A stretch of 64,000 nucleotides of DNA, from positions 1 to 64,000 of the forward strand of contig JAIVFI010000004.1 in assembly GCA_025558095.1 (NCBI GenBank), in the 5' to 3' direction. The notes beneath the pieces were generated by a model. That model worked only from the letters and a program-made list of their open reading frames with translations, was not told where the DNA came from and made no database searches. The stretch comes from Hyaloraphidium curvatum SAG 235-1 (taxonomy: Eukaryota; Fungi; Monoblepharomycota). Positions 9,740 through 54,182 of the stretch are shown here, piece after piece (within the stretch, counting starts at the first letter, position 1; each line of letters opens with the position of its first letter). Both the position numbers and the translations under genes were made by a program.

Positions 9740-10709
9740 ATGCGCTCGTGGTTGTTTGCCGTCGTCTGCGCCCTGGCCTTGGTGGCCTCTGCCGTCGCTG
9801 TTCCCCATAACGGCGGCGACAAGCAGGTTCGTCGGGCTTGCCGCCGATCCCGAGCGTCTTGACTCACCGATCTCCTTCCGCAGTGCTCGACGTACACCAA
9901 GTACAAGACGGTCGACAAGACCTACACGTACACCTCTACGTACACGAGCTATCACCCGACGACGACGACGTCCTACAAGACCGTCTACGAGACCAAGACC
10001 ACGCACGTCCCGACCACCGTGACCTACCCGAGTGCGTTCTGGCGCCCGCTGCCTGCAGACCACAGTCCTGACCCTCCTGCCCTCCAGCTACGTACACGAG
10101 CTACGCTACCGTGACCAAGTCGGTCCCGTACACGTACACGGCCTACGACACCAAGTACTCCACGTCGACGGCCTACTCGACATACACCTCGTACGCCACG
10201 ACGACCAAGTACAACACGTACACCACGCCCGTCACCTCCTACTATACTGTGACGCAATACAAGACGGTGGGCTCACCCAGAGCTACGATTCTCTCCCCCC
10301 GATCTGGTGCTGACCGCCTTCTCCTATTTTGCAGATCCCGTACACGACCACCGTCTACAAGACGGCGACGTACACCTACCCGGCCACCGAGACCAAGTAC
10401 CAGACCTACACCTACGTCTCGACCTACACGACCAAGGTGCCCACGACCGAGTACCAGACCTACACGACGACCAAGAAGGTAGGCTCCGATCGCACATCCC
10501 GTCCGCTTCCCGTCGCTCATCTGCATTCTTTGCATTCTTTGCAGGACAAGGTGACCTCGTACGTGACCTACACGACTACCTACCCCTGCTCCTCGTACTC
10601 GACGACCTCGACCTACTACCCCCCTTCGAGCTCGACCTACTCGGCCTCGCGCACGACCGACTACCAGGGCACCTGGGCCACCACGCCGACGCAGATCGCG
10701 GAGAACTGA
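9740..10709 (+). CDS. Secreted Thr/Tyr-rich protein, copy 1 (5 exons, ~240 aa)
   Basis: Signal peptide MRSWLFAVVCALALVASAVA; exons ~9740-9826, 9884-10031, 10088-10266, 10335-10478, 10545-10709 splice in frame to a TYT/TTY-rich chain; near-identical copies at 29809-30741 and 53220-54182. Confidence 0.88.
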
Positions 10710-11282
10710 GTGGTTTTGACCCCGGGAACGGTGTCGCGATTCCCAGCTTGATGATTAGTAGCTTGCGCCTCGATTCCCTGTGATTCCGCGCTGCATTAGA
10801 GGCTCCGGATACCTGCTGTTCCGCCGCCCCACGTCCATTCGGTCCGCGGAAGACCGGGCGTGGCCTCAAGAAACCACTGACCTCGACGGAGAGCCCGTCG
10901 GCGCCCATGACGCTCCCCATTTCGGGAGGGGGGGGGTGGCCGTATCGTCGGAGGGATTCGGCTTGCGTAGGGACTTGGAGGAAAAGCCTCACCCCGGGAG
11001 ACCGCCTTTGCCTCCGAGCAGAGCCTGCTCCCTGAATCCGGAGCATCCCCCATCCATCTTGCTTCTTTACAAATTGGCGGGCGGGGAACGAGCTATCGCT
11101 GGTTGTGCAACGGCCTGGTGTTCCGTGCAAGCGGGCGGGATCGGTCGGACGTCCGGCCACCGGCCGGCCTTCCGCGGGCGGCGCAACGGCACCCGCGTCG
11201 GCGCAATTCCATCGAGTGAAGCTGCATCGGCAGCTAATTCTTGATCCCGTCTTCGCCCGGCCTGCACTCACTCCCCTCGACA

Positions 11283-11782
11283 ATGGCACTCCGCACCGCC
11301 GCCTTCGCCGCCGCCGTCCTCGTCCTGGCGCCGCCGGGCTGACCGCCGCCGCGCCCGCCGGAGCCCCCGACGTCGGCATCTTCAAGCGCGCCTGCTCCGA
11401 ATGCAGCACCCAGGACCACTACTGGTCCGGACACCCGCTGCCCGCACCGCAGAAAGCACCGCGCTGACCTCCCCCCGCCGGCAGCGAGTACGCCTACCCC
11501 GGCGCCCCCGCCGGCACCGTCGCCTGCGTCTCCTACGCCTCCGCCGGCCCGCGCGCCCTGTACCGGCGCTACGGCCCCGCCCTGACCTGCTTTTCCGCCG
11601 GCACCGACACCACCTGCTCCGGCACGGTGTCCAAGAGCGAGCCTTCGGGCGTGGCGACGGCGGGCGCGTGCCAGGCCTACTGCTCGCCTTCGCTCTACTT
11701 TGCCCATGCCGCTTCCACCGGGGCGTGCACCTGCTTCTCGTCGTGCGGGAGCAACGTCGCGGCACCCGGGTTCGACCTCTAA
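11283..11782 (+). CDS. Small secreted Cys-rich protein, PAN/apple-like C-terminus (2 exons)
   Basis: Not in the ORF track as a unit: MALRTAAFAAAVLVLAPPGLTAAAP...IFKRACSECSTQDHYC|EYAYP...GACQAYCSPSLYFAHAASTGACTCFSSCG...FDL*, with one GT-AG intron carrying a CTGAC branch site. Confidence 0.75.
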
Positions 11783-12080
11783 GAGTGCTGATCAGATCGC
11801 GAGGTCCCCTTCGGTGGGTGCCGACCGGTAGATCGGACGGAAGGACGTCAACTAATGCCGCGGGTCGGATAGCTGCCCGGCCCGATGTGCAAAGCGCCAG
11901 CAGCAGCGGATTGCCGTGGGGAAGGCGCTGGATCCTTACGGGCGCCTGGCACGATGTCCCAATGGCCTCTAGGCAGCAGTGTACCACTTATAGCCATATG
12001 TTATTGTCTGACTGCGTGCGAGAGACCGAAGCCTGCGGGGCGGTCGTCTGCTTGTTCTCCTGGGCTCCACGTCCAGGCCA

Positions 12081-13889
12081 TTACCCCCTGCATGCGGCCA
12101 TCACGACCCGAGCGAGGGGCCCAGCTTTGTCGCGGTCCCCGACAGAGCGGACCCGACTTCGTCGGCGGCGACTTCGTCGGCGGCGACTAAGGGGAGCGGG
12201 TTCCGTCGCACGCTGGGGAGGAGCAACGCGTCGATGACGTGGATCTGTGTGCGGGTCAGGTTTCCTACGGAAGAGGTCGATCATCCACCCACCACTCCGT
12301 TGTGGACCAAAATGTCCTTGATGATGACGTTTGCTCCGTTGACGAGGGCGGTCCCTTGGACCACCGTGACCTTGAGGACCTGGCCGTTGACGGCCTGGAG
12401 CTCCAGCCCGTCCGTTAAATCCGACGAGTAGTACACTCCGCGCCCCGAAATGACGATCATGGTCTCTGCGATCATTGCCAGCTGTTCCGGAGTTTTGCCC
12501 TGCAGTGCTTGAACCGCCTCCATGCTGGCGAAGGCACGGTTGACGGGAACGAAGCTGCGAGGTGGACGGGATAAGCTCCAATCGGTGCTCGCCGTTCCCC
12601 AGCGCAGGGAGGGAACGCACAATGTCGCGCCTGGCTGGTCCGGAAGGCCGTAAGAGTTCGCTGTTTCAGCCAGGCCTGCAGCTTCCAGAAGCGAGCGGAA
12701 GGACGTCAGGTTTGCCTTTGTCATGGTCGTGGTCGGCCAGACGGGGGGGATGACCATGCTACGCGTGACAAGAATCATGCCGTTGGATGCAGGGATGCTG
12801 TCGATCACGGTCGAGTTGTCGAAGCCGAAAAAGGGGAAGACGCCGAGGCTGGACCGGGTGAGCACGAGATACTGCGGATCCAGCCGCGCCAGGGTGAAGG
12901 ACGAGTTGAGCAGCGTGGGTGCGAGCACCTTTCCCGGCAGCCGCGAGGGTTCAATGTAGGCTTGCACGATCTGGTACCGAAGGACGTCGCCCGGATGCTG
13001 CTCGGCCGTGGGTTCGGAGACCGTCCGCTCCATCAGCCTGCCGACGGGAGAGAAGCCCCATCCCTCATTGGTCACCGCGAAAAAGGTTACGTTGGGATAG
13101 CTCGGGTTGCGGCCTTGGAGGATGTCGCGCACGGGCGGGGTCAGGTTGATGAGGGAGAGGATTCTATCCACCTGGGAATCGCGATACGTGATCAACGTCC
13201 GCCCCACGATACCACGCGGCGGACCAACGTGATACGTCTTCTGTATCGCGCCGGACGCGATCCGTTCCAGCGTGCGATGGATGCTCCCCGCGGCGGGCGT
13301 CGCCGCGGTCACCGTCTTTGTGCGGAAAGAGGTCCGCGTCACGAAGCTGGTGCGGGTGAGCGTGCGGCGCGGGCAGCACGGCGATCCCTGCGGCCGCGCC
13401 GGGTTGTACTTGGCCAGCTTGATTCCGGCGGGGCAGGTCCGGCACGCGGGGACGGCGTTGTTGCGAACCAGATGGCGGTGCACAGCCGGCTCCGCGGGCG
13501 GCGGCAGTGCGTACGCGTTGGCATCGGGCTGGGCGGCCTCGCTGATCCCGTCGAGGGGCGACTCGATGTCGTTGGCGAACAGCCGGGGAGGGCGGGTGAC
13601 AGTGGTCGTCTTGGTTCGGAACACGGTGGTTGTGCGGCGCAACGTGGCGGTCTTGACCGCGCCGCCGGCGGCAGGGCAGCTGCGGGCAGGGGGATCCGGG
13701 CGGGTGAGCACGGGCTTGGACCACGATGCGCTCAGGGACTGCCCACCAGCAGGACGGGCCATGGTTGTTGGCTGCGACGCGCGGCAGCTTCGGGCACGAG
13801 GGGCCAGCGAACCAGAGCTGCGTCGCGTCCGCCGGGCCCGCGGCGCAGGCGGCCAGGAAGGCAACGAGGAAGATGAGCGCGAATTTCAT
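12081..13889 (-). CDS. Secreted fasciclin (FAS1) domain protein with Cys/Thr-rich N-terminal modules
   Basis: Signal MKFALIFLVAFLAACAA; FAS1 H1 motifs NVTFFAVTNEGW and TL(F)VPVNRAF; H2 motif VNGANVIIKDILVHNGV|IHVIDALLLP after an intron. Confidence 0.85.
12154..12188. repeat. 15-bp tandem duplication (CGACTTCGTCGGCGG x2.3) encoding VAADE-VAADE in the fasciclin tail
   Basis: Directly visible. Confidence 0.85.
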
Positions 13890-14357
13890 TTGAGGGGGAA
13901 CGATGCCGAGTGACTTCGTCGGGTGAGTCAATCCCGGAGCTTCCCGGCCTCGTGTCCTTAATCCTTGAATTGTCGTAGTCAGTCAGCCCAGGCCGCGGTC
14001 CGTTCCGATACCCCGATCTGAAAAAGCCAATTGGGAGTGGTGCAAGTCACAAATCCGTCTTTCTTGACAACCGGGGGAATCCGAGCGAGCTCATTCTCCA
14101 TGACCCGCGGATCCAGTAGGCGAGGCGACGGGGCGGTCTCCGCCGGGCAGCGGTCGGCCGGGAAAAGGACAGATCCGTCCCCCGACAGACCGGCCGAGCA
14201 ATGCCTCCGGTCGGAGCTGCGCTGCGTTTCCGCCCTGCCCGGCTTGGTGCGGTGAACCGTACCGGAGCCGGCTCATCCTCGCGGGCGGTTGCCAGCTTCG
14301 CCGATCGCGCCGATCCCCGCCGCCCGCCAATCTCCCTCGTCTCTTCCGCCCCCCGAA

Positions 14358-15505
14358 ATGCCCCCCGACGACGGCACCGCCCTCCCGCCCCCCGGAACAG
14401 CCGGCACGGCGGGCGCGCGGACGCTGCGGATCGCGCTGCTGACGGCCGACAGGGTGGTTGCGGGTGGGCGAACGCGCGGGCGCGCGGAACGGAGGCGAGG
14501 TGCTGACGACGCATTGCAGGGCTGGAGCACTTTGGCAGCCTCGAGAAAATGTCCGTACTTCCCCGCCGGACGCGACTGGCACCGCCGGGAGCCGTTCTGA
14601 TCCTCCTTCCTGCCGTCCGTCCAGCTTCGGCGACTGGTTCCGCGCCGTCGCGTCGGCGTACTTCCCCTCCCTCTCCGTCTCCCTCGACAACTACGACGTC
14701 ATCGACGGCATCTACCCCCCGAACCCGCATGCGTACGACCTGCTGGTCCTCACGGGCTCCGAATCCGCTGCGTTCGACGACGACCCGTGGATCGTCGCGC
14801 TGCGCGGGTTCCTGCGGAAGACGGAGGAAGAGGGGCCGCGGCTCGCGGCGTTCTGCTTCGGGCACCAGGTCGTGCACCATGCGCTGGGGGGGAGGGCGGA
14901 GATCAATCCCGGGGGGAGGGAGGAGGGGCGGGCTGTTGTGGAATTGAACGGGGAGGGGAGGGGGGTGTTGAAGACGGGCAAGGGGGCGTTTGCGGTGAAT
15001 ATCGGGCACAGGGTGGGTTGTCGCTTGCAGTGCGATGCGGTGTGGGTGGGGCGTGCTGACGCGCCCCCCGCCCGGCCGAAGGACCACGTCGCGGAGCTGG
15101 CCCCCGGGTTCGTGGGGCTGGGGAGCACCCCCCAGACGCCGGTGCAGGGCGCCGTGCTCGACGACCGGATCTTTACGCTGCAGGTTCATCCCGAGTTCAG
15201 CAGCGAGTACTTCGAGGGGTACCTCCGGGTCGCGAGGAAGGCGGCCGAGGCGGCGGGGGAGGTTGGTCAGCCGCGGGGTGCGCCGGGCGCGGATTGACAA
15301 CCTTTCGTGGCAGGGGTACGACGGGCCCACGGTGGCCGAGATCGACGCGTGGATCGAATCGTTCTACCCGCCTGGGAAGACTGGGGGCGGCGAGTACCTG
15401 CCGACGGACGCGCTGTGGATCGGGGCCAAGGTGGTGTCATGGGCGGTGGGCGGGACGGAGGGGATACTGAGCGACGAGGAGCTGGAGAAGATGGCGGCAA
15501 AGTGA
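14358..15505 (+). CDS. Class I glutamine amidotransferase-like protein (multi-exon)
   Basis: LRIALL, YDLLVLTGS..AFDDDPWI, nucleophile AFCFGHQ, LQVHPEF His-Glu pair. Confidence 0.9.
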
Positions 15506-15640
15506 CCGATAGACTGCCAGACGGGTATTCCGAGTAGACCGCGGAGGAGCGGCCACGTGCGCCTCCGACCCGCCGCCACCAAAACAACGCGAACCAGTCG
15601 ACGCGTCGGCATTCCTCCCAGCAGCCGCCCCTTTCCCGCG

Positions 15641-16558
15641 ATGGACACGTCCTCGTCGTCGTCGTCGTCGTCGGACGAGCGGCCCGACCGCCCCAGGAAG
15701 GAGAAGAAGGACAAGAAGGACAAGAAGGCCGGCAAGAAGAAGGACCGCGGCGCGTCGCTCGTGGTGCTCGTGCGCCACGGCGAGAAGCCCGTGCCCAAGG
15801 CGGCCGACGTCGACGGCGTGCTGTCGCCCGTCGGGCAGGTCCGCGCGCGCTTCCTCGCCGAGCGCTTCTTTGCCCGCCCCGCCGGCGGCCGGCCCACCTT
15901 CGCGCGGCTGGCGGACCCCGCGGGCGGCGCCGCGGCGGACGTCGCGATCTCGCACGTGTTCGCCACGCGGCCCGATCGCGCCAAGAAGAAGCGGCTGCGG
16001 ATGGAGCTCACAGTGCGGCCGGCAGCAGAGGCGCTGGGGCTGCCCGTGAACCTGGACTACGACGCGGACGACGCCGAGGCGTGCGCGGACCACATCCGCT
16101 CGCTGGGCGCGAAGAAGAAGAAGGACAAGGAGGGCAAGGAGAAGGAGGGCAAGGAGAAGGAGGGCAAGGCGGGCAAGGAGCCCAAACCCCGAGCCGTGCT
16201 GGCCTGCTTCCCGCACGAGCACCTCCCCGTCCTCGCCCGCTCCCTCCTTCTCAAGGGGATCAACGCCGCCGGCGGGGACCCCAAGTGGCGCTCGGCCTCG
16301 CCGCGGTGGGACGACGACGACTACTCCACCGTGTGGATCGTCAGGCCAGGGGGCAACCTGGAGAGCTACGACATGGACAACCCGCCGCGCAGCGGGGCCG
16401 CCGCGGCGGTGGAGTGGGAGAAGGGGGACTTTTTCGAGTGGTACGCGAGGTTGGACATGAGGAAGAGGGCGGGGAGCCCGGCGGTGCCTCCGGCCGCGGC
16501 GGGAGGGCCATCCGGGAAAGAGGGTGGGCCGGAGCTCAAGGTCCCGAAGAAAGGCTGA
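15641..16558 (+). CDS. Histidine phosphatase / phosphoglycerate mutase-like protein
   Basis: VLVRHGEKP, LSPVGQVRA, RMELTVRP, VLACFPHEHLP, WDDDDYSTVW; Lys-rich inserts. Confidence 0.85.
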   Translation: MDTSSSSSSSSDERPDRPRKEKKDKKDKKAGKKKDRGASLVVLVRHGEKPVPKAADVDGVLSPVGQVRARFLAERFFARPAGGRPTFARLADPAGGAAADVAISHVFATRPDRAKKKRLRMELTVRPAAEALGLPVNLDYDADDAEACADHIRSLGAKKKKDKEGKEKEGKEKEGKAGKEPKPRAVLACFPHEHLPVLARSLLLKGINAAGGDPKWRSASPRWDDDDYSTVWIVRPGGNLESYDMDNPPRSGAAAAVEWEKGDFFEWYARLDMRKRAGSPAVPPAAAGGPSGKEGGPELKVPKKG

Positions 16559-17223
16559 GCGTGGTTGGTTCTTGGGTGCGGCGCACGACCGGTGGAACGG
16601 GAGCGGCGGGATTGTAGATCCTTGGGTCGAGGGTTGGCCGAGATACATCCCTCTTGCTTGCCTTGTCCGACCCCATGACCGCCCCTCCGAGCAGCAAGCG
16701 ACACCCCAGCAAACCAGACCGCGAACGAAGCAACTCAATCCGAGTCCAGTCCCGACCCCCGATCCTGGCACGTCCGCGGCGCCCGGCAAAAGCCCCGGCG
16801 TCGCCAGCTTCCCTTCATCCTGGCCACGCGTTCGGCAGGCATCGCGGCGCCCCATGTCGTCTCCGCGACCGCATCAACGTTCCGAGATCACCTGCCGGGC
16901 CGGCGGCGGTCACTCGCCCGGCCGGCCGTCGGCCGGACCGACTTTTGCCGCGGACAACCGCCGGCCTTTGGGCGCCGGTTGCGGGTTGACGTGCTTGAGG
17001 TAGTCCAGGTATGCTGTGGGGGCGGGAAGGACGCGGATCAGACCATCTCGATCGGTGAAGATGGCGAAGAAGCGCGGAAGCGGCAGAAAGACGGGCTTGA
17101 AGGGCGGGAAACGAGTCTGCCAGCGCGGGAACGCGTCCTCCGGCGAGGTCCCGGAACCGTGCCTCCCACAGCCCCTCCCCTCCCCTCTCCAGCCACCCTC
17201 CGCCCCTCCCCCTCCCCGCACAA

Positions 17224-17481
17224 TCACCCACCGACGAAGCACCACGCGGCCGCCAAGCACGCCACCCCCCCGCCCACCCACATCCCCGCCCTCGCCAAAG
17301 CGCCCCCGACCCCCTCCCCCGCGTCCCTCATCCCGCCGCTCATCATCTCCGAGCCCTCCCTGATCGCGGCGGTCATCTGCGAGGCGCCCTCGCGCGCGGC
17401 GGTGGCGAGCTCGCGGAACTCCATGATGGAGACGACGTCGGAGGGGATGATTGTCTTGAGGAGGGAGGGTTCCTTGGACAT
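17224..17481 (-). CDS. Small hypothetical protein with C-terminal hydrophobic segment
   Basis: 85-aa ORF with protein-like composition ending MWVGGGVACLAAAWCFVGG; may splice to a further exon near 16910-17150. Confidence 0.5.
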   Translation of the reverse strand: MSKEPSLLKTIIPSDVVSIMEFRELATAAREGASQMTAAIREGSEMMSGGMRDAGEGVGGALARAGMWVGGGVACLAAAWCFVGG

Positions 17482-17853: not shown

Positions 17854-18665
17854 TCAAGTCCTTCTGCTTGTCGTCGTGCTCCGTCTCGCTGTGGTCTTCC
17901 TCTTGGTCGTCGTCTTCCGTCTGCTCGTCGTCATCTTCGGAAGCACCCCGGGAGCCCACCGCCTCAGCACCCCGTCGATCCACCCGCTGAGCGCCGACAC
18001 CTTTGCGTACCCCCCCACCGGGAACCGCGGGTTCCCGCAGTCCGGCCCGAAGCTCACGGCGCCCACGAGCACCCACCCCCCGTTCCTCCGCGCGAACAGC
18101 GGCCCCTCAGAATCCCCCACTCACGCGTCCCGGCCGGGCCAACCCGCGCACAGCACGCTCGGGTGCGGCGGCCGATCGAAGGCCTGCAGCGCCGCGCAAA
18201 TGCTGGCGTTGTTGACGGCCAGGTCGGCCTGCCGGAGGTCCGACGAGAGGGAGCCGTCGTCGGTGATACCCCACCTGATGGTGCGGACGGGGTACCCGAC
18301 GGGGGGGAAGGAGGGGTCCCGGTTGATGGCGATGCGGGCGGGGGTGCGGTTGCCGTAGTTGGTCGGAGCCGAGAGGCGGAGGATGGCGACGTCGTTGGCC
18401 GGGAAATCGTATCGCGGGTGGACAACGATCTGCACCACGCCGCAGTCGATCCCGCGCTCGCGCCGGGTGGTGGCGTCCGAGTTGCGGCGGTACGTGGCCG
18501 CGGTGACGTTGGCGGGCGCGATGCCCTCGGCGCAGTGCGCGGCGGTAAGCACAAGGTTGGGCGCGATCATGCTCCCGCCGCACTGGAAAGTGCCGTCGGC
18601 CCGTTTAATACTGAGCAGAGCCATCCACGGGTAGGTGGCGGCCGAGGGCACGCGGACCTCGGACT
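17854..18665 (-). pseudogene. Trypsin-like serine protease, probably pseudogenised
   Basis: CGGSMIAPNLVLTAAHC and NDVAIL present; in-frame TGA at 18121-18123 replaces the Cys of GRDxC; GDSEGP instead of GDSGGP; no signal peptide or IVGG. Confidence 0.8.
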
Positions 18666-19030
18666 CGCGAGGCGCAGCACCCGTTTTCTCCCCACACCGG
18701 CGAATATGGGGCCCGCTGACCCAGCACGCACGGGCACCATGCCAGATGCGATTTCTGCGAGAGGCATGGGATAGGAGATGCATCCGTTGCGCAGCGGGGC
18801 CTGGGGCTTCTGGCACGAGTTTCGCGCACGGTGACCCGGCACGCAAGACCGGTGTAGTCTGGACTCGAGATCACGGTCCGACACCTACGATCGGGGAAAT
18901 GAATGGGATTCGATGGCTGGATGGGAGTAGCAAGCGCGAGCGAGCTCGCTCCGCTTTGCCGCTCCAGGCCCAGCGACACCGCAGGCAGGGAGACGGCCAT
19001 TCTCGGCGCAGCCTCCTCGCCCGCCTCGCA

Positions 19031-29808: not shown

Positions 29809-30741
29809 TTACATGCTCCCCGGGCGCGAGATCTCCGTCCGCGGGGACTCGTCGGTCGAGCTCGAAGGGGGGTAGTAGGTCGAGGTCGTCGAGTACGAGG
29901 TGCAGGGGTAGGACGTCGTGTAGGTCACGTACGAGGTCACGTAGTCCTGAAACGGCTGGAGATGAGCAACGGGAAGCGGACGGGATGTGCGATCGGGGCC
30001 GACCTTCTTGGTCGTCGTGTAGGTCTGGTACTCAGTCGTGGGCACCTTGGTCGTGTAGGTCGAGACGTAGGTGTAGGTCTGGCACTTGGTCTCGGTGGTC
30101 GGGTAGGTGTACGTCGCCGTCTTGTAGACGGTGGTCGTGTACGGGATCTGCAGAATAGGAGAAGGCGGTCAGAACCAGATCGGGGGAGAGAATCGTAGCT
30201 CTGGGTGAGCCCACCGTCTTGTATTGCGTCACAGTATAGTAGGAGGTCACGGGCGTGGTGTACGTGTTGTACTTGGTCGTCGTGGCGTACGAGGTGTAGG
30301 TCGAGTAGGCCGTCGACGTGGAGTACTTGGTGTCGTAGGCCGTGTAGGTGTACGGGACCGACTTGGTCACGGTAGCGTAGCTCGTGTACGTAGCTGGAGA
30401 GCGGGAGGGTCAGGACTGTGGTCTGCAGGCAGCGGGCGCCGGAACACACTCGGGTAGGTCGCGGTCGTCGGGACGTGCTTGGTCTTGGTCTCATAGACGG
30501 TCTTGTAGGACGTCGTCGTCGTCGGTTGGTAGCTCGTGTAGGTGGAAGTGTACGTATAGGTCTTGTCGACGGTCTTGTACTTGGTGTACGTGGGGCACTG
30601 CGGGGGCGAGATCGGTGAGTCAGGCCGAAGACGGGAGCGGCAGGCGCGGCCAACCTGCTTGTCGCCGCCGTTATGGGGAGCAGCGGCGGTGGAAGCCACC
30701 AGGGCCAGGGCGCAGACGAGGGCGAAGAGCCACGAGCGCAT
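29809..30741 (-). CDS. Secreted Thr/Tyr-rich protein, copy 2 (altered, shortened C-terminus)
   Basis: Same exon structure as copy 1; ends YYPPSSSTDESPRTEISRPGSM*; one Tyr->Cys change (TKCQT). Confidence 0.85.
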
Positions 30742-31069
30742 GTCGGGTCACGGCGAGGTCGCGGAGGCGGTTCGAGGTCGGAGAAGGCGAGGAGGGACTG
30801 AAAGGCCGAGGGCAGATGTCGATGGGGTGGGAGGGCAGAGGCCCGCGCCTTAAGAAGTTTCGAGCTGCCTACTGCACGCATTGCTGCATGGCAGGGCGCA
30901 TCGCTGCGTGGTTCGCGGGAGGCACTGCCCTGTGCATCGTACATGCAGCTCCCCACAGTCCCGATGCTCCCAGCCACGCCCCCAACCCGCGCTCCGCGCT
31001 CCATTCACAGCGCACGCCCGAACCAACTTGGAGCCTCTGACTATCGCCCGGCGCGAAGATTGGCCCCCG

Positions 31070-32376: not shown

Positions 32377-32426
32377 TACATTCCAGGTCTATCTGTATAC
32401 ATACATTCCAGGTCTATCTGTATACA
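32377..32426. repeat. Perfect 25-bp tandem duplication (TACATTCCAGGTCTATCTGTATACA x2)
   Basis: Directly visible. Confidence 0.9.
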
Positions 32427-32519
32427 TGGCGGAGCGTGTGTGCGCGGCGAGCGGCAGAGCGGCAACGTGGCAGTGGAGATCGATGGCAGAAGCCACGGGG
32501 GTGTGACGGCACCGACCGG

Positions 32520-32660
32520 CCCTGTTAAGAAATTTCCAGTGCCTGCGGCATGCGTCTTTGCGATGCGCATGGCCTGCGGTGGTGCGGGAAGGCCTGCCCC
32601 GCGCGCTGTGCACCTGCAGCTCCCTGCTCCGCCGACCCGATCACCACACCGATCGACCTC
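32520..32660 (-). repeat. Orphan copy of the Thr/Tyr-gene upstream element
   Basis: Reverse complement contains TCCCGCACCACCGCAGGCCATGCGCAT...GCAGGCACTGGAAATTTCTTAA, matching ~9565-9630; no coding exons follow. Confidence 0.8.
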
Positions 32661-34976: not shown

Positions 34977-35573
34977 CTAGTAGCACTTGGTCTTGGTGAA
35001 CGTGACCGTGACGGTGGAAGCTTCCTGTAGAAGTGCGGGAGGCGATGAGTCGCATGGCGGTCCGAGGCGTCGAGGGCGGGTTCCGGACGCACCTTCTTGA
35101 TCGTTACGGTCTTCGTGACCGTCGCAGTGACCGTGGCGGTGACCGTGGCAGTCACCGTGGTCGTGTTCGCGACGGTCTTGGTCACTACGGAGGGAGGAAA
35201 GCACGAGATGGGCGGGGGTGCGAAGCGCGAGGCTCGGGGCGGCACCCACCCGTCCCGCCCGGCGCCGTGACGGTAAAAGTGACCGTAACGGGCTTCTTGA
35301 TGGTGATCGTGATCGTTTCGGCCGCCTTCTTGATCGTGGAAGTCACGGTGACGTACTTGGTGGGGCACTGCGGAGGTGGGGGAGATCGGTGCGTCAGAGA
35401 GGGTGCCCCCGACTTGCGCGCCAGCGGAAACCCACGGGCCCGCTGCCAGAGCCGCTGCCGGAGCCGGCGCCGGTGCCCTTGTCGGCGACGACGTCCTGGC
35501 CGCGCACGGCGATGGCGAGGGCGAGGAGGCAGGCGATGACGAGGAGCCACGTGCGGAGGGTGGAGGAACGCAT
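34977..35573 (-). CDS. Small secreted Thr/Val-rich (TVT) protein, diverged relative of the Thr/Tyr family (4 exons)
   Basis: MRSSTLRTWLLVIACLLALAIAVRG...GSGSGS|CPTKYVTVTSTIKK...TVTATVTATVTATVTKTVTIKK|EASTVTVTFTKTKCY*. Confidence 0.78.
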
Positions 35574-41828: not shown

Positions 41829-42767
41829 TCACCGCCGCATGGTCGTCGTCTTCCTCCGCTTTGTCGTCGTCTTCCTCCTCTTGGTCGTCGTCCTCCTCTT
41901 CGTCGTCTTCCTCCCGCCCGGCAGCACGTCCGGCGCCCACGTCCTCATCACCCCGTCCACCCACCCGCTGACCGCCGACACCCTCGCGTACCCCCCCACG
42001 GGCCAATCCGGATCCGCGCACCCCTCCCCGAAGCTCACGACCCCCACCAGCACCCACCCCCCGTCCCTCGCCGCGAAGAGGGGGCCGCCGGAATCGCCCT
42101 GGCACGAGTCCCTGCCGGGGAACCCGGCGCACATGATGGTGGGGTGGGATTCCAGCCGCGAGCACTGCGCGGCGGTGGCGGCGCGGAGGTCCGCCTGCAG
42201 GAGGTGCTGCGAGGATTCGCCGCGGTCGGCGACGGCGCCCCAGCCGATGGTGCGGAGGGCCGTTCCCGCGGCGGGGAACGAGGGGTCGCGGTTGATGGGG
42301 ATGCGGGCGGGGGCGCGGGCGCCGTGGTTTGCGATCGGTGTGACGCGGAGGATGGCGACGTCGTAGGGGTTCTGCCGGCGGACGTGCGCCGGGTGGACGA
42401 TGATCTGGTCGACGCGGTACTCGACCCCGCGCTCGTCCGAGGTCTGCTGGTACTGGTCCAGGCGGTACGTTGCCACGAGGAGCATGTCGGGGGTGGTGCC
42501 CGGCTCGTCGACGCAGTGTGCGGCTGTGAGTACGAGGTTGGGTGCAATCATGCTGCCGCCGCAGATCTGGTCGAATGTGGACGAGGCGATGAGCATGGCC
42601 ATCCAGGGGTAGGTGGTGGAGGAGGGCACCCGCGTGCCGCCGACGATGTTGGGGACGAGCTGGCGGCGCGCCGGGGCGGGGTGGGTGGCATTGGTGGGGG
42701 AGGCGTGGGCCGGGGGCGGCACGCAGGCGAGGAGGGCGAGCAGCGGGAGGGCGGCTGGGCGGCGCAT
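41829..42767 (-). CDS. Secreted trypsin-like serine protease with basic Thr-rich tail, intronless
   Basis: Signal peptide, IVGG, LTAAHC, YDVAIL, GRDSCQGDSGGP; tail RKTTKRRTTTKRRKTTTKRRKTTTMRR. Confidence 0.95.
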   Translation of the reverse strand: MRRPAALPLLALLACVPPPAHASPTNATHPAPARRQLVPNIVGGTRVPSSTTYPWMAMLIASSTFDQICGGSMIAPNLVLTAAHCVDEPGTTPDMLLVATYRLDQYQQTSDERGVEYRVDQIIVHPAHVRRQNPYDVAILRVTPIANHGARAPARIPINRDPSFPAAGTALRTIGWGAVADRGESSQHLLQADLRAATAAQCSRLESHPTIMCAGFPGRDSCQGDSGGPLFAARDGGWVLVGVVSFGEGCADPDWPVGGYARVSAVSGWVDGVMRTWAPDVLPGGRKTTKRRTTTKRRKTTTKRRKTTTMRR

Positions 42768-43269
42768 CGCGGCGGCAGACACCCCGGCGGGCACGACAAG
42801 TGCACGGCCAATGCCGGCGAGGCGTCCGCTTCCGGGTTCCGGGGGTGCGGCGGGCGGCCGGGCCGTTGACAGGTCCGGGCGGTGCCGACTGCACGCGCAG
42901 GCTGCGGAGTGCCGGCCCGGTCCTCCTGGCCTCGGCCGCCGGGGAGCGCGAGAGCGATGCGGCAGCGGCCGAGGGATCGCGGCCCTTCCGGCCTCGGGAG
43001 GCCCGCTGGGTGGGCAACGGCGGTTGTGCTGTGGGGGATGCCGCTTGACGCCGCGGCGGCGGGCGCAGCACACCTCGGTCAGCGTCACCCAGACCCAGGG
43101 AACGAGGGATCGCAGGAACAATCAGCATGTCGACAGGATGCTATGGATGTCTTCCTACAGGTGAGTGATTCCTCGGTCGTCCGGCCACAGCCGGCGCCGG
43201 TACACGCCCAGTGAAACCTCGGCACGTCCTGGTGGCCACCTGGACACCTCCAACCGGCGCCAAACCCCC

Positions 43270-45653: not shown

Positions 45654-45803
45654 GGGGTGCCAAGAAGGGAGAGGGACGGGAAGCGGCTGTGGAGAATACA
45701 GCACATCTTCTGCGACATAGAGTACTCTACATCCGTGGGGAAGGAAAACCAAGCACTGTGGCAGCCAGACCAGGCAATAGCAATGTCTCCGTCCCCCTCC
45801 TTC

Positions 45804-46986
45804 TCAACGTCCCGGGTCCACGGCCAGCACCCGCGTCACCGTCGTCGTCCTCACCACCGTCTCGGTCTCGCGCACCGTTTCGCGGACCGTCTCCGTCTCG
45901 CGCACGGTCTCCCGGACCGTGGCCGTGCTCGTCCGCACGACCGTCGCCGCCCGCCCCCCGTCCACCCTCGCACACGCCACCGTGCACATGGCCGGCCTCG
46001 CCGCCGTCGTCGTCCGCTTCCTCCTCGCGGCCGCGAGCACCCCCGGCGCGTGCACCGACATCAGCGCGTCCATCCAGGGGATCAGCGACGAGGTCCGCGC
46101 GTACACGGCCAGGTACACCCGCGGGTCCGCGCAGCCCGCCGTGCCGAAGCTCACGAGGCCCACGTGCACCCATTCCCCGGCCCGCTGCACCATCAAGGGG
46201 CCGCCGGAATCGCCCTGGCACGAGTCCCTGCCGGGGCTCCCCGCGCAGATCATGCTCGGGTAGGCGCCGTCGGGCCCGACCTGGGCGCGGCACGCGGCGG
46301 GGGCGGCGGTGGATATGTCGACCTGCTGCAGGTTGGCCGGCGAGGGCCCGGAGTAGCTGAGGGCGCCCCAGCCGATGGTGCGGGCGGCGGTGCCACCGGC
46401 CGGGAACGCCGGGGTGCGGTTGAGGGCGATCCAGCGGGGGGTGTTGGACCCGTGGTTGGTCGGGGCGGAGAGGAGGAACACGGCGGCGTCGTGCTCGTTG
46501 GTGTCCGCGTTGTACAGCGGGTGCACGAAGATCTGGAGCACCGCGTAGTCGATGCCGCCCTCCGCGGCCGTCGAGAGGCGCGAGTTGAGGCGGTAGGTCG
46601 AGGCGGTCCAGTTTGCGGCCAGGGTGCCGGCGCCGCAGTGGGCGGCGGTCAGCAGCATGTTGGGTGCGACCAGCGAGCCGCCGCAGAACCAGCCGGTGGC
46701 GCGGTTGTAGATCATGGCCATGAAGGGGTAGACGGCGGCGCCGGGGACCGAGGAGCCGCCGACCTAAACGGGAGGGGGAGCAACCGGTCAGCGGGCGAGG
46801 CGGACGGGGCCCGGCCGGTCAACCTACAATGTTGGGCGACAGGCCGCCGACGGCCACCGGCGCCGCGCCGCCGACGAAGAACCCCGGCGGCGCCGTCGGC
46901 GGCACAACACGGGCGGCGGCGGGACCGGCGAACGCGAGCGCGGCGAGCAGCGCAGCCGCAGCCGCGGCCAGACGTCGGGCCGGCAT
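45804..46986 (-). CDS. Secreted trypsin-like serine protease with Thr/Val/Arg C-terminal extension (2 exons)
   Basis: MPARRLAAAAALLAALAFA...PNI|VGG, LTAAHC, HDAAV, GRDSCQGDSGGP; tail TVRETVRETETVRETVRETETVVRTTTVT. Confidence 0.93.
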
Positions 46987-47639
46987 TCGGGGCCGGCGGG
47001 AACGAGATCACGGCGGGCGTGCGGTCACCGCGGCATGGGCGGGCGGGGGCGGCGCAAAGGGTCCCGGCAAGCATATTTCGTCGGCGGGAGCGGGCACTGG
47101 ACCCGATGGCCGGCCTGCCGGCCGGACCGGCCGCCCACGATCCAGCGGGTATCCGGCGTCCTGGTCCAAGCGGCGGCGATCCTGAGTGAGCTCCGGATGG
47201 TATCCAACGGAATCCGTGTATTTTCGGCGGCTTCCGGCTTCCCCGGCACTTCCTTCTGCCGCGGACCCTAGGCGGGGCGGTGCAACGCCGAAACCGCGTC
47301 AAGGCGCAAACTCGATGCGTCGACTCGATTCGCTCAATTCTGGAGCTCGATCCGAATATCGGCGCCTGGATGCGGACGGCGACGACGGCGTGATTCACGA
47401 TCAGGGGCATCGCGGGCGGTGCTGCCGCGGCTTTCGGACCGCGCACCACAATCCGGCCTTGGATCCGGGTATCTGGCGACAGGACCAACGTCATCGCTAC
47501 GAGGGAAGGTCCGAGGCAGTGCCGGCCAGGATCCGCTCCGCAATCCGATCACCGGGCTCCTGCTGTGCGCTTCTGGGCCACCCGATACTTGCCGCAACGA
47601 TCCACGCACAACCCAACGAGTCCGCGCCCACGAGCAAAC

Positions 47640-49044
47640 ATGAGCGCATCGCAGTTCGGCACGCCCCCGCCGGTGCCGACATCGTACCTCAGCCCCGCGG
47701 ACGAGCGGCCCCCGACGCGGCCGCGCTCCCCCTCCGGCCCGCGGCCGCTGCCCGGCTCCCCCGCGTCCCCCTCTTCCGCGTTCGGCGCGCCGCCGCCGGT
47801 GCCCGACTACGGAGCCCCCGACTACGGCGCGTCCTCCCAACCGGCTGAGAGCGCCCCGGGACAGGGCGGCGCCTCTTTCGGCGCCCCGCCCGCTGTTCCG
47901 GACTATTCCTCCCCCGCGGGGGACACTCCGGTCGCCCCCTCCCCGCCGGCCTCGCGCTCCCCCTCCGGCACACTCCCCCAACCCCCCTCCGTCCCCTCGT
48001 ACGCACCCGCCCCGATGCCCACATACGGCTCCTCCCCGCGCCCCGCCGCCGTCGTCGTCGCAGCCACCGCCGCTGACGGCGGCCCGCCCCTCCCCGAGGG
48101 CTGGATCATGGTGCTCGACAAATCATCGGGCAGGTGGTACTTTGTCGACAACCGGACCTCCCCGCCGACGAGTGGGTCCCCGTTTTCCTCCCCCCTCTTT
48201 GATCCGGGAAGCTGATCCCTGCCCGGCAACAGCGACCTGGACCGACCCCCGCACCGGCACCTTTGCCGCTCCGTACTCCTCCGCCTCCGTCGTCGAATCC
48301 GCGGCCGTGGGCGCCGCGGTCGGCGCCGCCGCCGGCCTCACGGCGGCCCGCGCGGCCGGCAACGCTGAGCGGGCGATGAACGCCCCCGCCGCCGCCATCT
48401 ACCACGGCGTGGACAGCATGGAGCGGGTCGCCAACGCGCCGGTGAGGGCGGTGGACAATGCGGTGGCACGGTGGGTGCTTGCGCGCGCCCGGGGTCGGGA
48501 AGTAAGGGGGCTGATCGTCCGGTTGGCGGCAGGGCCGAGTACATGGCCGACGCGCCGCAGAGGATGGTGGACAATACGATCCACCGCGCCGAGTACATCG
48601 CCAACACGCCGCAGCGGATGGTGGACAACACCATCAACCGCGCCGAGTACATCGCCAACACCCCGCAGCGGATGGTGGACAACACCGTCAACAAGGTGGA
48701 ATACATGGCCAACGCGCCGCAGCGGATGGTGGACAACACGATGAACCGCGTGGAGCACATCGCCAACACGCCCCAGAGGATGGTGGACAACACGATGAAC
48801 AAGGTCGAGTACGCCTTGGACGCCCCCGAGCGGATGATGGACCGCGCCGTGAGTCTCCCTCTGCATTTTCCTTCTCCGCACCACGCTGATCCATTTTTGT
48901 GCCGAACTACAGGTTTACACCGCGCAGGCGCCCCAGAGGGCGTTCGACAACACGGTGAACGCGATGCAGCACGCCGCGGACGCGCCAAACAGGGTGCTTG
49001 GCAACGTCAAGAGCATGTTTTCCAAGTTTGGGATCAACTTCTGA
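47640..49044 (+). CDS. WW-domain protein with Pro/Tyr-rich N-terminus and 18-aa tandem repeats (multi-exon)
   Basis: PLPEGWIMVLDKSSGRWYFVDNRTSPPT|.TWTDPR; repeats of AEYIANTPQRMVDNTINR. Confidence 0.85.
48533..48848 (+). repeat. 54-bp coding tandem repeat (~6 close units, with degenerate units in flanking exons)
   Basis: CAG(A/C)GGATGGTGGACAA recurs every 54 nt. Confidence 0.92.
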
Positions 49045-49127
49045 GCCGTGCGGCGGCACGTGGCGTCGTGGCTTCCCGGTGTGTAACGTAGCCCTGGTTA
49101 ACTTAATGCAGTTCCTGGACGATGCAG

Positions 49128-50117
49128 CTACAGCCTGCCCGCCAGCCAGAACGCCACCGCCGCCGCAGCAGCAGCTTCCATCGCGCCCCCACTTGTCCTC
49201 GCCGCCGACCCCGGCTTCGACGTTGTCGTCACCAGCTGCACGTCCACCCTCTCGCACCCTGCCGCCCGATCAGTCCCTTCCCCATCACCCGCACGCGGAA
49301 CCCACCTCCCCGCATCGACGTACCCCCCTGCACCTCGCTGCACCCCTGCCCGACCACCGTCTCCCCCGCCCCCGCCAGCGGCACCGTGCACCCCGCGTCC
49401 TCGAACGCCCCGATCGTCGCCGCCGTGCCGTTGCACGTCGCGAGGGAGTACCGCGGCCCGAGGGGGGTCGGGAGCGCCTGGCACCGCCCGGCGAGCATGG
49501 AGGAGAGGCGGTCGAACGAGGAGGGGGGGCAGGAGGGGGCTTGGACTGTCCGCGCGCATGAGGGGGAGGGGAGGGGCGATGGTTCAGTCGGATGGGGATG
49601 GAGATGGGCGCGGGATAACCCACAGACTTCCAGGGTGACGTAGTCGCCCGACGTCCCGGGCGGGTAGTTTCTGGCACCGCGCCGCGTCAGCCCTGCTGGC
49701 TCCACGTCCGGCGCGGACGACCCACATCTTCAGCGAGTCCGAGCACGACGTCGCGTTGCTCGCCCCGACTTCGGGGTACTTCCTGCAGGCGCCGTCGGAG
49801 GTGGCCGCGAGGACGGCGGGGTCGGTGCAGGAGGATGCGGACGGGAGGGGGCGGGAGTTGCCGCCTGTGCGGGCGCGCGTCATCCACGCCGGTGGATCCA
49901 ACGGGCCGGAAACGCACCTAGGACGGTTCCTGTATGGCGATGCGGTATCGCAAGTGAGGATTCGCCGTCAGCGACAGCTGAGGGAGGGAGGGAGCCGCGG
50001 AGCACCGGTGCAGTTGTCGGACGCGAACACGACGGTGGAGAGGAAGACGGCCGCGGACGCCGGCGGGGCGAGGAGGGCGGCGTAGAGGCAGGCGGAGAGG
50101 AGGGCAGGTAGCCTCAT
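49128..50117 (-). CDS. Secreted Cys-rich, probably GPI-anchored protein (multi-exon)
   Basis: Signal MRLPALLSACLYAALLAPPASA; FASDNCTG, AFEDAGCT motifs; hydrophobic end AAAAAAVAFWLAGRL. Confidence 0.7.
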
Positions 50118-50367
50118 TCTCGCTGTATTCGGCGGAAGCGTTTGGAGTGATTCAGAGCGTTGGGGTGGCAAAGCGAGCAGGCTGTGCGTCAGTGACGCGT
50201 GCCCTCGATCTGCAAAGGAACTTGAGGGCGACTACGATTGCCGAATACCGTCGCACGTCTATTGCAGGCCTCCGGTTCTAAGTGTCCAAGTCAAGTTAGC
50301 GGGCCCTTTGTGCTCTCTGCGATCATCGCGTCCGAGCACCATGGCGAATCGCTGGCGCCTCCGGCTC

Positions 50368-50520
50368 TCAATCCCGCTTGCACCCCGCGGCCGCGGACTC
50401 CGCCGGAGCGCAGACCTTCTTGTGCCTTGGACGGTGGCACTCCTTCGAGCAGAGGAAGGCAAGCCTGCAGCGCGACCCCTTTGCCTCGCGCAGCTTGAAG
50501 GAACGACCGCTCCTACCCCT
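50368..50520 (-). pseudogene. Degenerate MYND finger remnant
   Basis: GSRCRLAFLCSKECHRPRHKKVC matches CxRCxxxxYCSxECQxxxWxxHKxxC with lost ligands and a deletion. Confidence 0.6.
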
Positions 50521-51597
50521 TACCACTACCACTACCAGCGCCGTCGCCAAGTACTGCACCCGCGATACGGAGCTCGCCAACGCCCTCGGCGAGGAGGACG
50601 AGAAGCCCGGGGCCCTTCTGCTCCTCCCTCACTCGTACGCTGACCAGCACTGCCGGCACATGATTTCGAACATCGCCGGAAGCGTGGGCAGCGAGGAAGC
50701 GCGCGACGTCCGCGGCTGTTGCGTAGTGGTCGCCCGACGCGGTGGCGGAGATGGCGTAGGGCTCCATGTACTGCGCGTTCTTTGGATAGCAGACGTCGGC
50801 GAAGGCGGGAGCGAGGTCGTTCGTAAAGTAGACGCCCCGCGCCAACTCGAGCTTGGACGAAATGTGGTCGCGGTAGAAGTCCTGGATGCGCTGGCCGGAG
50901 ACCTTTTCGACGACTGCACCGGCGATAGTTGTTGCCAGGTTCGAGTAGGTTATGCGGGCGCCCGCAGGGTCGAGCGGAGCCGTCCAGAGGCGCCTGGCCG
51001 CCTGTGCCAGCGTCTCGTCCGGGTTCCTGTTGCGGAAGTAGACACCCATCTGCCGCTCGTCCAGCCCCGTCGTGTGGCGCAGGCAGTCCAAGACCTGTAA
51101 TGGATAAGCCAATCACGATGTCCGTGAGCGGGGCCCCGATGCAGCGGCGAGAACCTTACCTTGAGGCTATCGGACCCCTTCAGCCCCTGCAGCTCGGGCA
51201 CCAGGGACACGACGTCATCCTGCAAGCTCAAGTTGCCGCGTTCGTACAGTTGCATCACGGCGGTTGCGGTAAATAGCTTCCCGACGCTGCCGATGCGGAA
51301 GAGGGAGCGCTCCGGATCGGGCTGACCGTTCTCGCGGCCGTCGACCGTGTAGCACGTGCCGACCGTGCGGGGCGACACCACGCGGGCGCGGGTGGTCTGA
51401 TCGACGTAGTGGTGGACAAAGGCAAAGGCGGAGAACTTGCCGTTGGCAGCGTAGGGGGCGATAAATGAGTCAAGCCAAGGAATGACTTCGGCCGGGTCGG
51501 CATGGGCCCTGGTGGCGCTGGGAAAGTGCCCCGAAACGGGCAGCGCCGCCAGGGAGGCGAGCACGAAAGTGCCGATGGCAAAAAGACGGCCGAACAT
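50513..51597 (-). CDS. Secreted beta-lactamase (class C/AmpC-like) family protein, apparently 3'-truncated (2 exons)
   Basis: Signal peptide, FRIGSVGKLFTA (SxxK), LRHTTGL, YSN, ASGDHYATAADVARF; no third HxG/KTG motif before the stop. Confidence 0.8.
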
Positions 51598-51819
51598 CGC
51601 TGGTGGATGGTGCCGTTTGACGTGCTTGACTTGCGTCGTCACGGCCAGCTATTTCACCGCACCTCGAAAGGGCTCGACAAGAAAGATCGAGGTTGCAACG
51701 CCAAGCCCCTCTTACCTTTCCCGCTCCGCAGCACGCAATCTACATTGATAAACTACCGCCGGACGAGCAAATATCGCTGTCCTCCCATACTCCTTGCGCA
51801 GTCGCTCAACCCCCTCCGT

Positions 51820-52950
51820 TCAATCGCCGCCCCTTCTCGGGGCCCAAATCTCCCCGTACCCCCACCTAATCTCCAAACCCGCCCTGGCCTCGCCCGCCGC
51901 CTTCGCCAGGCCCGACTTACGCCTCGCGTCGTACTCGGTCCCGACCGCGTCCGCCAGCGACCCCTGCAGATCCAGCATCTCGAGCCGCTCCCCCAGCGTG
52001 GGATCCGACAAAATACTCCGAAACAGCCCGGCGCCGTCCTCCCCGCCGCGATGGACGAGCCGCTTCAGAGAGGGTAGGCCGCGCAGGAGCGCGGCGAGGT
52101 CGGGATCGAAAACATTGTCACAGCCCGAGAGGTCGAGCGAAAGCAGGCCGGGGAAGTGCGAAGGGATCCACGGGTCGTCGGGGACAAAGGTGCGTGCTCT
52201 GTAGACCGGGGACGAGAGGCGGAGGGAGGTGAGGGGGACGGGCTGAGGCGGGGGAGGGAGGTGCCGCGGGAGGTTGAGGAGCGCGAGGTCGACGAGGGTC
52301 GGAGAGCGGTAGACGGATTCCATGAGCTTCGGCAGGAGGGCCGCAGAGTTGCTCGAGGGGGGAGAGCGCGACGAGTGGGCGCACAGGATGCGGAAGGAGC
52401 ACAGGTTCGGGAGGGGGATCTCGTGGTCGGCGGCGAGGGCCGGCCACAGAGAAAAGGGCGCCAGGTCCACCTTGGCGAGCGAAGGTGTGAGGTCGATGGA
52501 GAGAAGGGTGGTGCGGTGCCGAAGGAAGAGCACTGCAAAGGTCGAGGGGGACGGGACGGTCCGTCCGAGGTGGGATCCAAAGATGAGGTGTTCCACGCCG
52601 TGAATCCGGTCCAGGAGGGCGCGGAGCGAAGTGTCCGGCATCGACGGCCCCGGCCAGTCGTCACTGATGGGATCCGACGGCGATTCGACATGGGCCGAGG
52701 GGGATCCGCCAACGCGCCGGAACCACCCCCGGCCGTTGTCGTCCACCACCGCCGCAAAGCGCTTGGAAACCCGCCGAATCCTGAGCAGGTCCGGCTGCCC
52801 GAAAAAGATAAACATGTGGGCTAGAAGCTGGAATCCGTGGCACCGGAGGGGGGCCGAGAAGAGGTCAGAGTTCACGCGTCGGAAGCCAACTCCGAGGCCA
52901 CGCAAGCTCCAATTCACCTCTGACGGGAATAGGACGTCGAGAGCCTCCAT
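51820..52950 (-). CDS. F-box / LRR protein (one intron near the N-terminus)
   Basis: MEALDVLFPSE|LLAHMFIFFGQPDLLRIRRVSKRF; LTSLRL, LLSLDLSGC, LEMLDL. Confidence 0.8.
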   Translation of the reverse strand: MEALDVLFPSEVNWSLRGLGVGFRRVNSDLFSAPLRCHGFQLLAHMFIFFGQPDLLRIRRVSKRFAAVVDDNGRGWFRRVGGSPSAHVESPSDPISDDWPGPSMPDTSLRALLDRIHGVEHLIFGSHLGRTVPSPSTFAVLFLRHRTTLLSIDLTPSLAKVDLAPFSLWPALAADHEIPLPNLCSFRILCAHSSRSPPSSNSAALLPKLMESVYRSPTLVDLALLNLPRHLPPPPQPVPLTSLRLSSPVYRARTFVPDDPWIPSHFPGLLSLDLSGCDNVFDPDLAALLRGLPSLKRLVHRGGEDGAGLFRSILSDPTLGERLEMLDLQGSLADAVGTEYDARRKSGLAKAAGEARAGLEIRWGYGEIWAPRRGGD

Positions 52951-53219
52951 CTTGGCGATGGAGAGCGAACGGCCGGGGGGGATTAGGAGTCGAAACCGCG
53001 ATTTTGATCGGTTGGGCGATCGGGACGTGGGGCGGTGCCTCCCGCACCACGCGCAGCGATGCGCCCTGCCATGCAGCAATGCGTGCAGCAGGCAGCTCGA
53101 AACTTCTTAAGGCGCGGGCCTCTGCCCTCCCACCCCATCGACATCTGCCCTCGGCCCTCCAGTCGCGCCTCGCCCTCTTCATCCTCGAACCGCCTCCGCA
53201 CCCTCCGCCGTGACCCGAC

Positions 53220-54182
53220 ATGCGCTCTTGGCTCTTCGCCCTCGTCTGCGCCCTGGCCCTGGTGGCCTCGGCCGTCGCTGCTCCCTATAACGGCGGCGAC
53301 AAGCAGGTTGGCCGCGCCTGCCGCCCGTTCGGAGCGTTCTGACTCACCGAATCTCGCCCGGCAGTGCCCCACATACACCAAGTACAAGACGGTCGACAAG
53401 ACCTACACGTACACTTCCACCTACACGAGCTACCAGCCGACGACGACGACGTCCTACAAGACGGTCTACGAGACCAAGACTACGCACGTCCCGACCACCG
53501 TCACCTACCCGAGTGAGCTGCGGCGCGCCCGCTGGCCTCCGACTTCATCTCTGACTCCCCTTGCCTTGCAGCCACGTACACGAGCTACGCTACCGTGACC
53601 AAGTCGGTCCCGTACACCTACACGGCCTACGACACCAAGTACTCCACGTCGACGGTCTACTCGACCTACACCTCGTACGCCACCACGACCGCGTACCAGA
53701 CATATACCACGCCCGTGACGTCCTACTACACCGTGACGCAATACAAGAAGGTGGGCTCAGTCAGAGCTGCGATTCTCTCCCGCCGATCTGGTGCTGACCG
53801 CCTTCTCCCCTTCTGCAGGTCCCGTACACGACCACCGTCTACAAGACGGCGACGTACACCTACCCGACCACCCAAACCAAATACCAGACCTACACCTACG
53901 TCTCGACCTACACCACCAAGGTGCCCACGACCGAGTACCAGACCTACACGACCACCAAGAAGGTGGGCCGATCGCACGTCTCGTCCGCTTCCATTCGCTC
54001 ATCTCCAGCCGTTTCAGGACTACGTGACCTCGTACGTGACCTACACGACTGCCTACCCCTGCTCCTCGTACTCGACGACCCCGACCTACTACCCCCCTTC
54101 GAGCTCGACCTACTCGTCCTCGCGGACGACCGACTACGAGGGCACCTGGGCCACCACGCCGACTCAGGTCGCGGGGAACTGA
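53220..54182 (+). CDS. Secreted Thr/Tyr-rich protein, copy 3 (5 exons)
   Basis: Same signal peptide, introns and C-terminus (GTWATTPTQVAGN*) as copy 1. Confidence 0.88.

Follow-up and report, generated by a model that had tools for sequence, protein, structure and literature searches.

A three-copy orphan family of predicted secreted, threonine- and tyrosine-rich low-complexity proteins in the fungus Hyaloraphidium curvatum

What kind of protein is encoded by three closely similar, intron-split genes of the fungus Hyaloraphidium curvatum, and what might it do? The window analysed here, i.e., the whole 64,000-nucleotide stretch of strain SAG 235-1 at positions 1-64000 of contig JAIVFI010000004.1 (C4), has a G+C content of ~66% and is part of a 31.9-Mb genome in 55 contigs. 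An original prediction, made from the DNA letters, described in this window a dispersed family of secreted Thr- and Tyr-rich proteins bracketed by two cysteines, each specified by five exons. We find the three copies at the proposed places and in the proposed orientations, and each could be modelled as five exons joined across GT..AG introns of 55-68 nt with the frame open throughout (240, 231 and 240 codons, respectively). Copy 1 (9740-10709, forward strand; 240 residues) comprises exons 9740-9826, 9884-10031, 10088-10266, 10335-10478 and 10545-10709; copy 2 (29809-30741, reverse strand; 231 residues) comprises exons 30655-30741, 30450-30597, 30215-30393, 30004-30147 and 29809-29946; and copy 3 (53220-54182, forward strand; 240 residues) comprises exons 53220-53306, 53365-53512, 53572-53750, 53819-53962 and 54018-54182.

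Transcription was assessed with a public RNA run, X1, which is kept as contigs and is the sole public run that holds the locus. Spliced transcripts were looked for in this run and found for copy 1, where a 2465-nt contig lacks all four introns at exactly the modelled borders (skips of 57, 56, 68 and 66 nt) with no mismatches. A second contig runs from the 3' end that the copies share into downstream sequence specific to copy 3. Thus, copy 1 is spliced as modelled and copy 3 is at least transcribed. The spliced contig also extends ~1.47 kb upstream of position 9400 (~7930-9400), over a divergently oriented zf-MYND gene (8365-9285, reverse strand). The 5' ends of the two genes may overlap, or the assembler may have merged contigs.

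The frame that encodes the Thr/Tyr-rich chain is the one under purifying selection. Among the copies, the ratio of nonsynonymous to synonymous divergence (dN/dS) is 0.20-0.25 at a dS of 0.13-0.20, exons are 93-95% identical as against 78-86% for introns, and variable sites fall on the first, second and third codon positions in the numbers 15, 8 and 37 (p = 1e-5). An ATG followed by a signal peptide occurs in this frame only. In the spliced coding sequence the antisense frame also runs without a stop through all 241 codons, and the +2 frame, which would be Pro/Arg/Thr-rich, through 217, both owing to the use of ACC, ACG and TAC codons; it is because these two frames are open that a list of open reading frames is confusing here and holds many spurious long entries.

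The features proposed for the protein itself were largely borne out. Each copy begins with a signal peptide, MRSWLFA(V/L)VCALALVAS..A, and the mature chain of ~220 residues has a mass of 25 kDa, an isoelectric point of 9.1 and a grand average of hydropathy (GRAVY) of -0.9. The dominance of Thr, Tyr, Ser, Lys and Val holds in all three copies: from the first Cys onwards, Thr accounts for 35-36% of the residues, Tyr for 19-20%, Ser for 10-11%, Lys for 7%, Val for 6-8% and Pro for 6-7%, and Ser and Thr together make up 46% of the mature chain. The pair of cysteines is also present, one opening exon 2 and the other in a YPC motif at mature position 172. The tail beyond the second Cys is less biased (..SRTTDY(Q/E)GTWATTPTQ..) and has no hydrophobic end; the C-terminus (..DYQGTWATTPTQIAEN) is hydrophilic, in agreement with the proposed lack of a glycosylphosphatidylinositol (GPI) or transmembrane tail. 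The tail also has no N-glycosylation sequon. Tyr occupies identical positions in all three copies at 38 of 41 sites, and Pro recurs at a spacing of ~12-20 residues. The genes show almost no tandem repetition at the DNA level, and in the absence of such an array the bias is not that of a recent microsatellite. Copy 2 carries a third Cys (Y160C), which gives it an odd number of cysteines, and its C-terminal tail (29809-29946, reverse strand) has been replaced by a shorter one of 15 residues (TDESPRTEISRPGSM, ending at the stop codon); these two changes may signify either decay or divergence.

One element of the original prediction did not survive scrutiny, viz., the strict beta-strand periodicity read from an alternating T-Y-T pattern. 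When assessed against 2000 shuffles, the count of [ST]x[ST] in the trio was 20, as compared with 19.4 ± 3.7 in the shuffled sequences, and alternations over 5-mers were likewise at the shuffled expectation. With alternation at the level of chance, the premise from which both a hairpin or amyloid and a TxT ice-binding surface had been argued fails. The T-V-T pattern that had been ascribed to the family belongs instead to a separate 131-residue gene at 34977-35573 on the reverse strand. What departs strongly from chance is the dispersion of Tyr, Val, Ile, Phe and Trp: adjacent pairs drawn from these residues number 5-7, where 13.5-15.2 (± 2.7-2.8) are expected, and at most 5 of the 2000 shuffles gave values as low. 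In one comparison, 5 such pairs were counted against an expectation of 14.2 ± 2.7, a value matched by a single shuffle of the 2000. The commonest gap between these residues is 3, followed by 4 and then by 2.

Is the family known from elsewhere? Sequence searches and fold predictions alike were run with single exons or stop-free genomic references rather than the joined spliced protein. Pfam searches with each exon returned noise only. A word search with a stop-free 221-residue frame of copy 3, in which candidates of 121-387 residues were scored against exon 3 alone, found no match. A phmmer search against 1.84 billion representatives, for which the query was the 124-residue translation of 10335-10706 (exon 4, the stop-free 22 codons of intron 4 and exon 5), gave 0 matches at E <= 0.001. 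A sequence search of the PDB gave no meaningful match, a feature-based search of the ESM Atlas reached no named cluster, its top match (score 0.88) being an unnamed one, and scans of metagenome and prokaryote genome contigs yielded no relative. The literature on Thr/Tyr-rich secreted proteins, on tyrosine-rich zoospore adhesives and on dityrosine in zoosporic fungi held nothing relevant. The claims that the proteins contain no named domain and are undescribed are thus upheld across Pfam, PDB, word, phmmer and contig searches, and, as judged from sequence, the trio is probably a lineage-restricted orphan family.

Within the genome the family is likewise confined. A count of copies across the 31.9 Mb limits it to these three: exons 3 and 5 match copies 1 to 3 only, and the DNA pattern for T-Y-T-Y-T occurs elsewhere in the genome at control level only. 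The duplicated block is gene-sized, ~1.25 kb, consisting of ~185 bp upstream of the ATG, the gene and ~100 bp past the stop; it contains this gene and no other, with 83-95% nucleotide identity among the copies. The trio was produced by gene-sized duplications inside 45 kb, and three trypsin genes lie in the same region.

The upstream part of the block is itself conserved. In copy 1 it spans 9557-9739 on the forward strand (repeat families D6, I10 and I12), comprises the promoter and the 5' untranslated region, and is covered by the RNA contig. A relic of it (inverted repeat I11; 75% identical to 9557-9673) lies at 32481-32597 on the reverse strand with no Thr/Tyr gene behind it, and is followed at ~32380-32430 by a twofold tandem duplication (tgtatacagatagacctggaatgta). 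The copy 1 block includes an AT-rich island, GGAAACTTCTTAAAGG, at ~9617-9633. Such an island, GGAAA(C/T)TTCTTAA, is kept in all four upstream blocks, the others being at 30848-30862 (reverse strand), 53108-53122 and 32525-32540 (reverse strand), in a promoter that is GC-rich otherwise. It holds a GAAnnTTC dyad that resembles a heat-shock element; a TATA-like core element is equally possible.

If the pattern-based argument for beta structure fails, does structure prediction favour it on other grounds? For exon 3 alone, the best AlphaFold2 (AF2) model is a four-stranded meander (residues 2-10, 14-27, 33-46 and 50-58) with a predicted local distance difference test (pLDDT) value of 75.5, in which strands of 9-14 residues are joined by three turns, two of them at Pro. 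Searches with this model (Foldseek against the PDB, VIA wide and the Atlas) returned only generic long hairpins and meanders. Its weak neighbours, i.e., stems of pore-forming toxins, phage tail proteins and the B-repeats of Aap, all fall below significance (Foldseek E >= 0.01, TM-scores of 0.26-0.38, VIA Z <= 4.3). The evidence on beta structure is thus mixed, with the exon 3 meander in the best model on one side and, on the other, a pLDDT that varies from 33 to 75 over the five exon 3 models and is low in the exon 4-5 piece. Beta structure in the trio is at present no more than plausible.

The 131-residue gene that does show alternation is a possible diverged relative of the trio. This gene, m4 (34977-35573, reverse strand; exons 35436-35573, 35250-35367, 35093-35184 and 34977-35024), is present as a single copy in the genome and encodes a signal peptide followed by a linker of Gly and Ser and then by a chain that is opened by a Cys and closed by KCY before the stop. 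Its T-V-T/T-I-T alternation is strict, with a count of 21 as against 7.6 ± 2.4 in shuffles, and it has Val or Ile where the trio has Tyr. The intron layout is common to m4 and the trio, with a phase-0 intron just before the Cys codon, a second in phase 1 and a last in phase 0 after KK. After the first intron the chain begins CPTKY.. in m4 and CPTYTKY.. in the trio, and m4 and the trio resemble each other in their signal peptides (E 5e-5). Homology by sequence was not significant outside the signal peptide (m4 exon 2 versus exon 2 of copy 2, E 2.2). Kinship between m4 and the trio is therefore only a possibility, one that draws on architecture and location.

Taking these observations together, we tentatively favour, at somewhat less than an even chance, the reading that the trio is a small orphan family of low-complexity proteins, secreted, basic and rich in hydroxyl and aromatic residues, that serve as extracellular surface, wall or adhesive material. 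On this hypothesis the protein would leave the cell and many of its Ser and Thr residues would be O-mannosylated to some degree, while the regularly spaced Tyr residues would act as multivalent contact points, which could stack on wall polysaccharides, associate mutually or, with a tyrosinase or peroxidase, become oxidatively cross-linked. The Cys pair may close the chain or join chains head to tail, and the Pro-punctuated stretches of 9-14 residues would form beta strands where they are unglycosylated. The genome encodes one tyrosinase, located elsewhere in the genome, and ~5 protein O-mannosyltransferase (PMT) loci, which speak for a capacity for modification only. The exon 3 meander and the fasciclin-domain and trypsin genes nearby also fit this reading. 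Several points weigh against a surface-material role. The location, glycosylation, cross-linking and assembly of the protein are all inferred. The confidence of AF2 is inconsistent, with the five exon 3 models spanning 33-75, and the 124-residue piece of exon 4, intron 4 and exon 5 reaches a pLDDT of 39 with a coil for its C-terminal tail, though this piece carries 22 intron-encoded residues that may themselves spoil the fold. With so biased a sequence, searches by single exons lose sensitivity relative to one with the full-length chain, and distant relatives may have been missed. The chain carries neither a GPI signal nor a Pir repeat nor any known motif for wall anchoring, which leaves its mode of wall attachment unexplained; Lys-Tyr adjacency, a trait to be expected of a mussel-like adhesive, shows no enrichment; and the neighbouring genes are functionally mixed.

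The composition could also be that of an unstructured, mucin-like glycoprotein, a disordered and densely O-mannosylated hydrated coat or lubricant in which Tyr plays no special role. This alternative, which we regard as unlikely but deserving serious weight, would agree with the high content of Ser and Thr, the negative GRAVY value, the signal peptide and the PMT genes, as well as with the poorly folded exon 4-5 piece and its coil tail and with amphipathic-strand alternation no higher than chance. It fits less well with the abundance of Tyr, whose conserved positions and strong over-dispersion are not a mucin trait, with the lack of tandem repeats, with the strong beta-forming tendency of Thr, Tyr and Val together with the exon 3 meander at a pLDDT of 75 in the best model, and with a dN/dS of 0.2, which indicates position-specific constraint. 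That same beta propensity is in keeping with a further reading, in which the chains would self-assemble as a beta fibre or functional amyloid: Pro-punctuated strands would run as a long meander or stack in cross-beta fashion, with the two Cys closing each molecule or linking one to the next, in a rodlet- or fibre-like surface layer. The length of the exon 3 strands and their turns at Pro, the long hairpins and single-layer sheets among the weak structural neighbours, the bracketing of the core by two conserved Cys and the strict T-V-T alternation of the possible relative m4 all point in that direction; however, alternation in the trio itself is that of chance, the AF2 result is not reproduced over models or pieces, every fold match is below significance, and dense O-glycosylation would oppose packing. 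We consider such a fibre improbable.

Two further explanations carry much less weight. An ice-binding or antifreeze protein, with a flat beta face that displays arrays of TxT, might be suspected from the abundant Thr, from short TYTYT and TVT stretches and from the long T-x-T runs of m4, but the T-x-T count of the trio equals the shuffled expectation, the chain has no fixed coil period or tandem repeat, the residues that stand between its Thr are bulky Tyr rather than small ones, and searches of the PDB by sequence and by structure matched no solved ice-binding protein; this is hardly credible. It is very improbable, if slightly less so, that the trio is no functional family at all but either an artefact of annotation or a young duplicate of low complexity that happens to be transcribed. 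The lack of relatives, the open antisense and +2 frames and the signs of decay in copy 2 (its extra Cys and replaced tail) would be accommodated by such a view, whereas the exact GT..AG splicing that keeps the Thr/Tyr frame open, the restriction of ATG and signal peptide to that frame, the third-position excess of variable sites (37 versus 15 and 8), the low dN/dS and the greater conservation of exons than of introns speak against it. A more speculative extension of the surface-material hypothesis, and one that we consider a long way from likely, is that the trio represents a class of extracellular biomaterial that evolved recently and is specific to one lineage of early-diverging fungi: a Thr-spaced, Cys-bracketed chain with evenly dispersed Tyr that would build a surface layer or an adhesive (in zoospore encystment or a resistant wall, for instance) by cross-beta pairing, coacervation or oxidative coupling of Tyr, with m4 as a second, Tyr-free form.

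How does the trio compare with known systems? Plant extensins, the Eimeria oocyst-wall proteins GAM56 and GAM82 and mussel foot proteins are Tyr-rich, cross-linked extracellular structural proteins. The trio is like them in being predicted to be secreted, of low complexity, basic, Ser/Thr- or Pro-containing and dense in Tyr along the chain, with a tyrosinase gene in the host genome, but it is unlike them in having no sequence similarity by Pfam, PDB or phmmer searches, in its lack of SPPPP and YxY/YKYK motifs, of decapeptide (AKPSYPPTYK-type) tandem units and of enriched K-Y adjacency, and in a Thr content (36%) that is far higher. Fungal wall proteins and adhesins of the Als, Flo, Pir and Sed1 type are rich in Ser and Thr, O-mannosylated and equipped with beta-aggregation sequences. 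With these the trio shares a signal peptide, a Ser+Thr content above 40%, abundant beta-branched residues and a fungal host with PMT genes, yet it lacks a GPI signal, the Pir repeat, an N-terminal lectin or Ig domain and tandem repeats, is just 240 residues long, has an atypical 19-20% Tyr and shows no homology to them in the Pfam and phmmer searches.

Further resemblances were also considered. Prion-like domains of the FUS/hnRNPA1 type are intracellular, rich in Gly, Ser and Gln, and built on aromatic 'stickers and spacers'; the trio is similar in its evenly dispersed aromatics, small polar spacers and strong avoidance of adjacent aromatics, and different in being secreted, as predicted, Thr-rich, beta-prone and Cys-bracketed. 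The barnacle cement protein cp19k, an interfacial adhesive that is Gly/Ala-rich and Tyr-poor and needs no dihydroxyphenylalanine (DOPA), is likewise a small, secreted, basic protein in which Thr, Ser, Lys and Val prevail and Cys is scarce, whereas the trio is Tyr-rich, has no homology to it and comes from another kingdom. The long Ser/Thr-rich two-stranded hairpins of the exon 3 model recall the hairpin stems of pore-forming toxins and the B-repeats of Aap/SasG, but the trio has no other toxin or adhesin domain and the resemblance is non-significant and generic. Hydrophobins, finally, have eight Cys in a conserved pattern, unlike the mature chains of the trio with two (three in copy 2). What is new here is a family without relatives and its composition; the general kind, i.e., secreted Tyr- or Ser/Thr-rich extracellular materials, is already known.

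The region around the trio shows a local expansion of secreted-protein genes, without the functional logic of an operon. Its neighbours in the window include the zf-MYND gene, a BD-FAE hydrolase, an amidase, an MFS transporter and a Zn2Cys6 factor, in addition to a fasciclin-domain (extracellular adhesion) protein at 12281-13864 on the reverse strand, just downstream of copy 1. The three trypsin genes, identified by Pfam (PF00089), lie on the reverse strand at 41829-43121, 18121-18846 and 45804-46721, and at least one of them has (K/R)n-TTT units at its end, which form a polycationic tail (..GRKTTKRRTTTKRRKTTTKRRKTTTMRR, up to the stop codon). A tandem array of 54-nt units, in ~7 copies, occupies 48476-48850.

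Fungal genomes commonly encode secreted low-complexity proteins that are orphans, and for that reason the family is only moderately surprising. As it stands, it is a well-supported orphan gene family that is expressed, constrained and unusual in composition, with a function that is proposed. If the proteins are indeed extracellular structural or adhesive components, they would offer a compact 25-kDa Thr/Tyr polymer of interest for biomaterials, and would provide a first molecular handle on the proteins of the surface and wall in an early-diverging fungal lineage that has been little studied.

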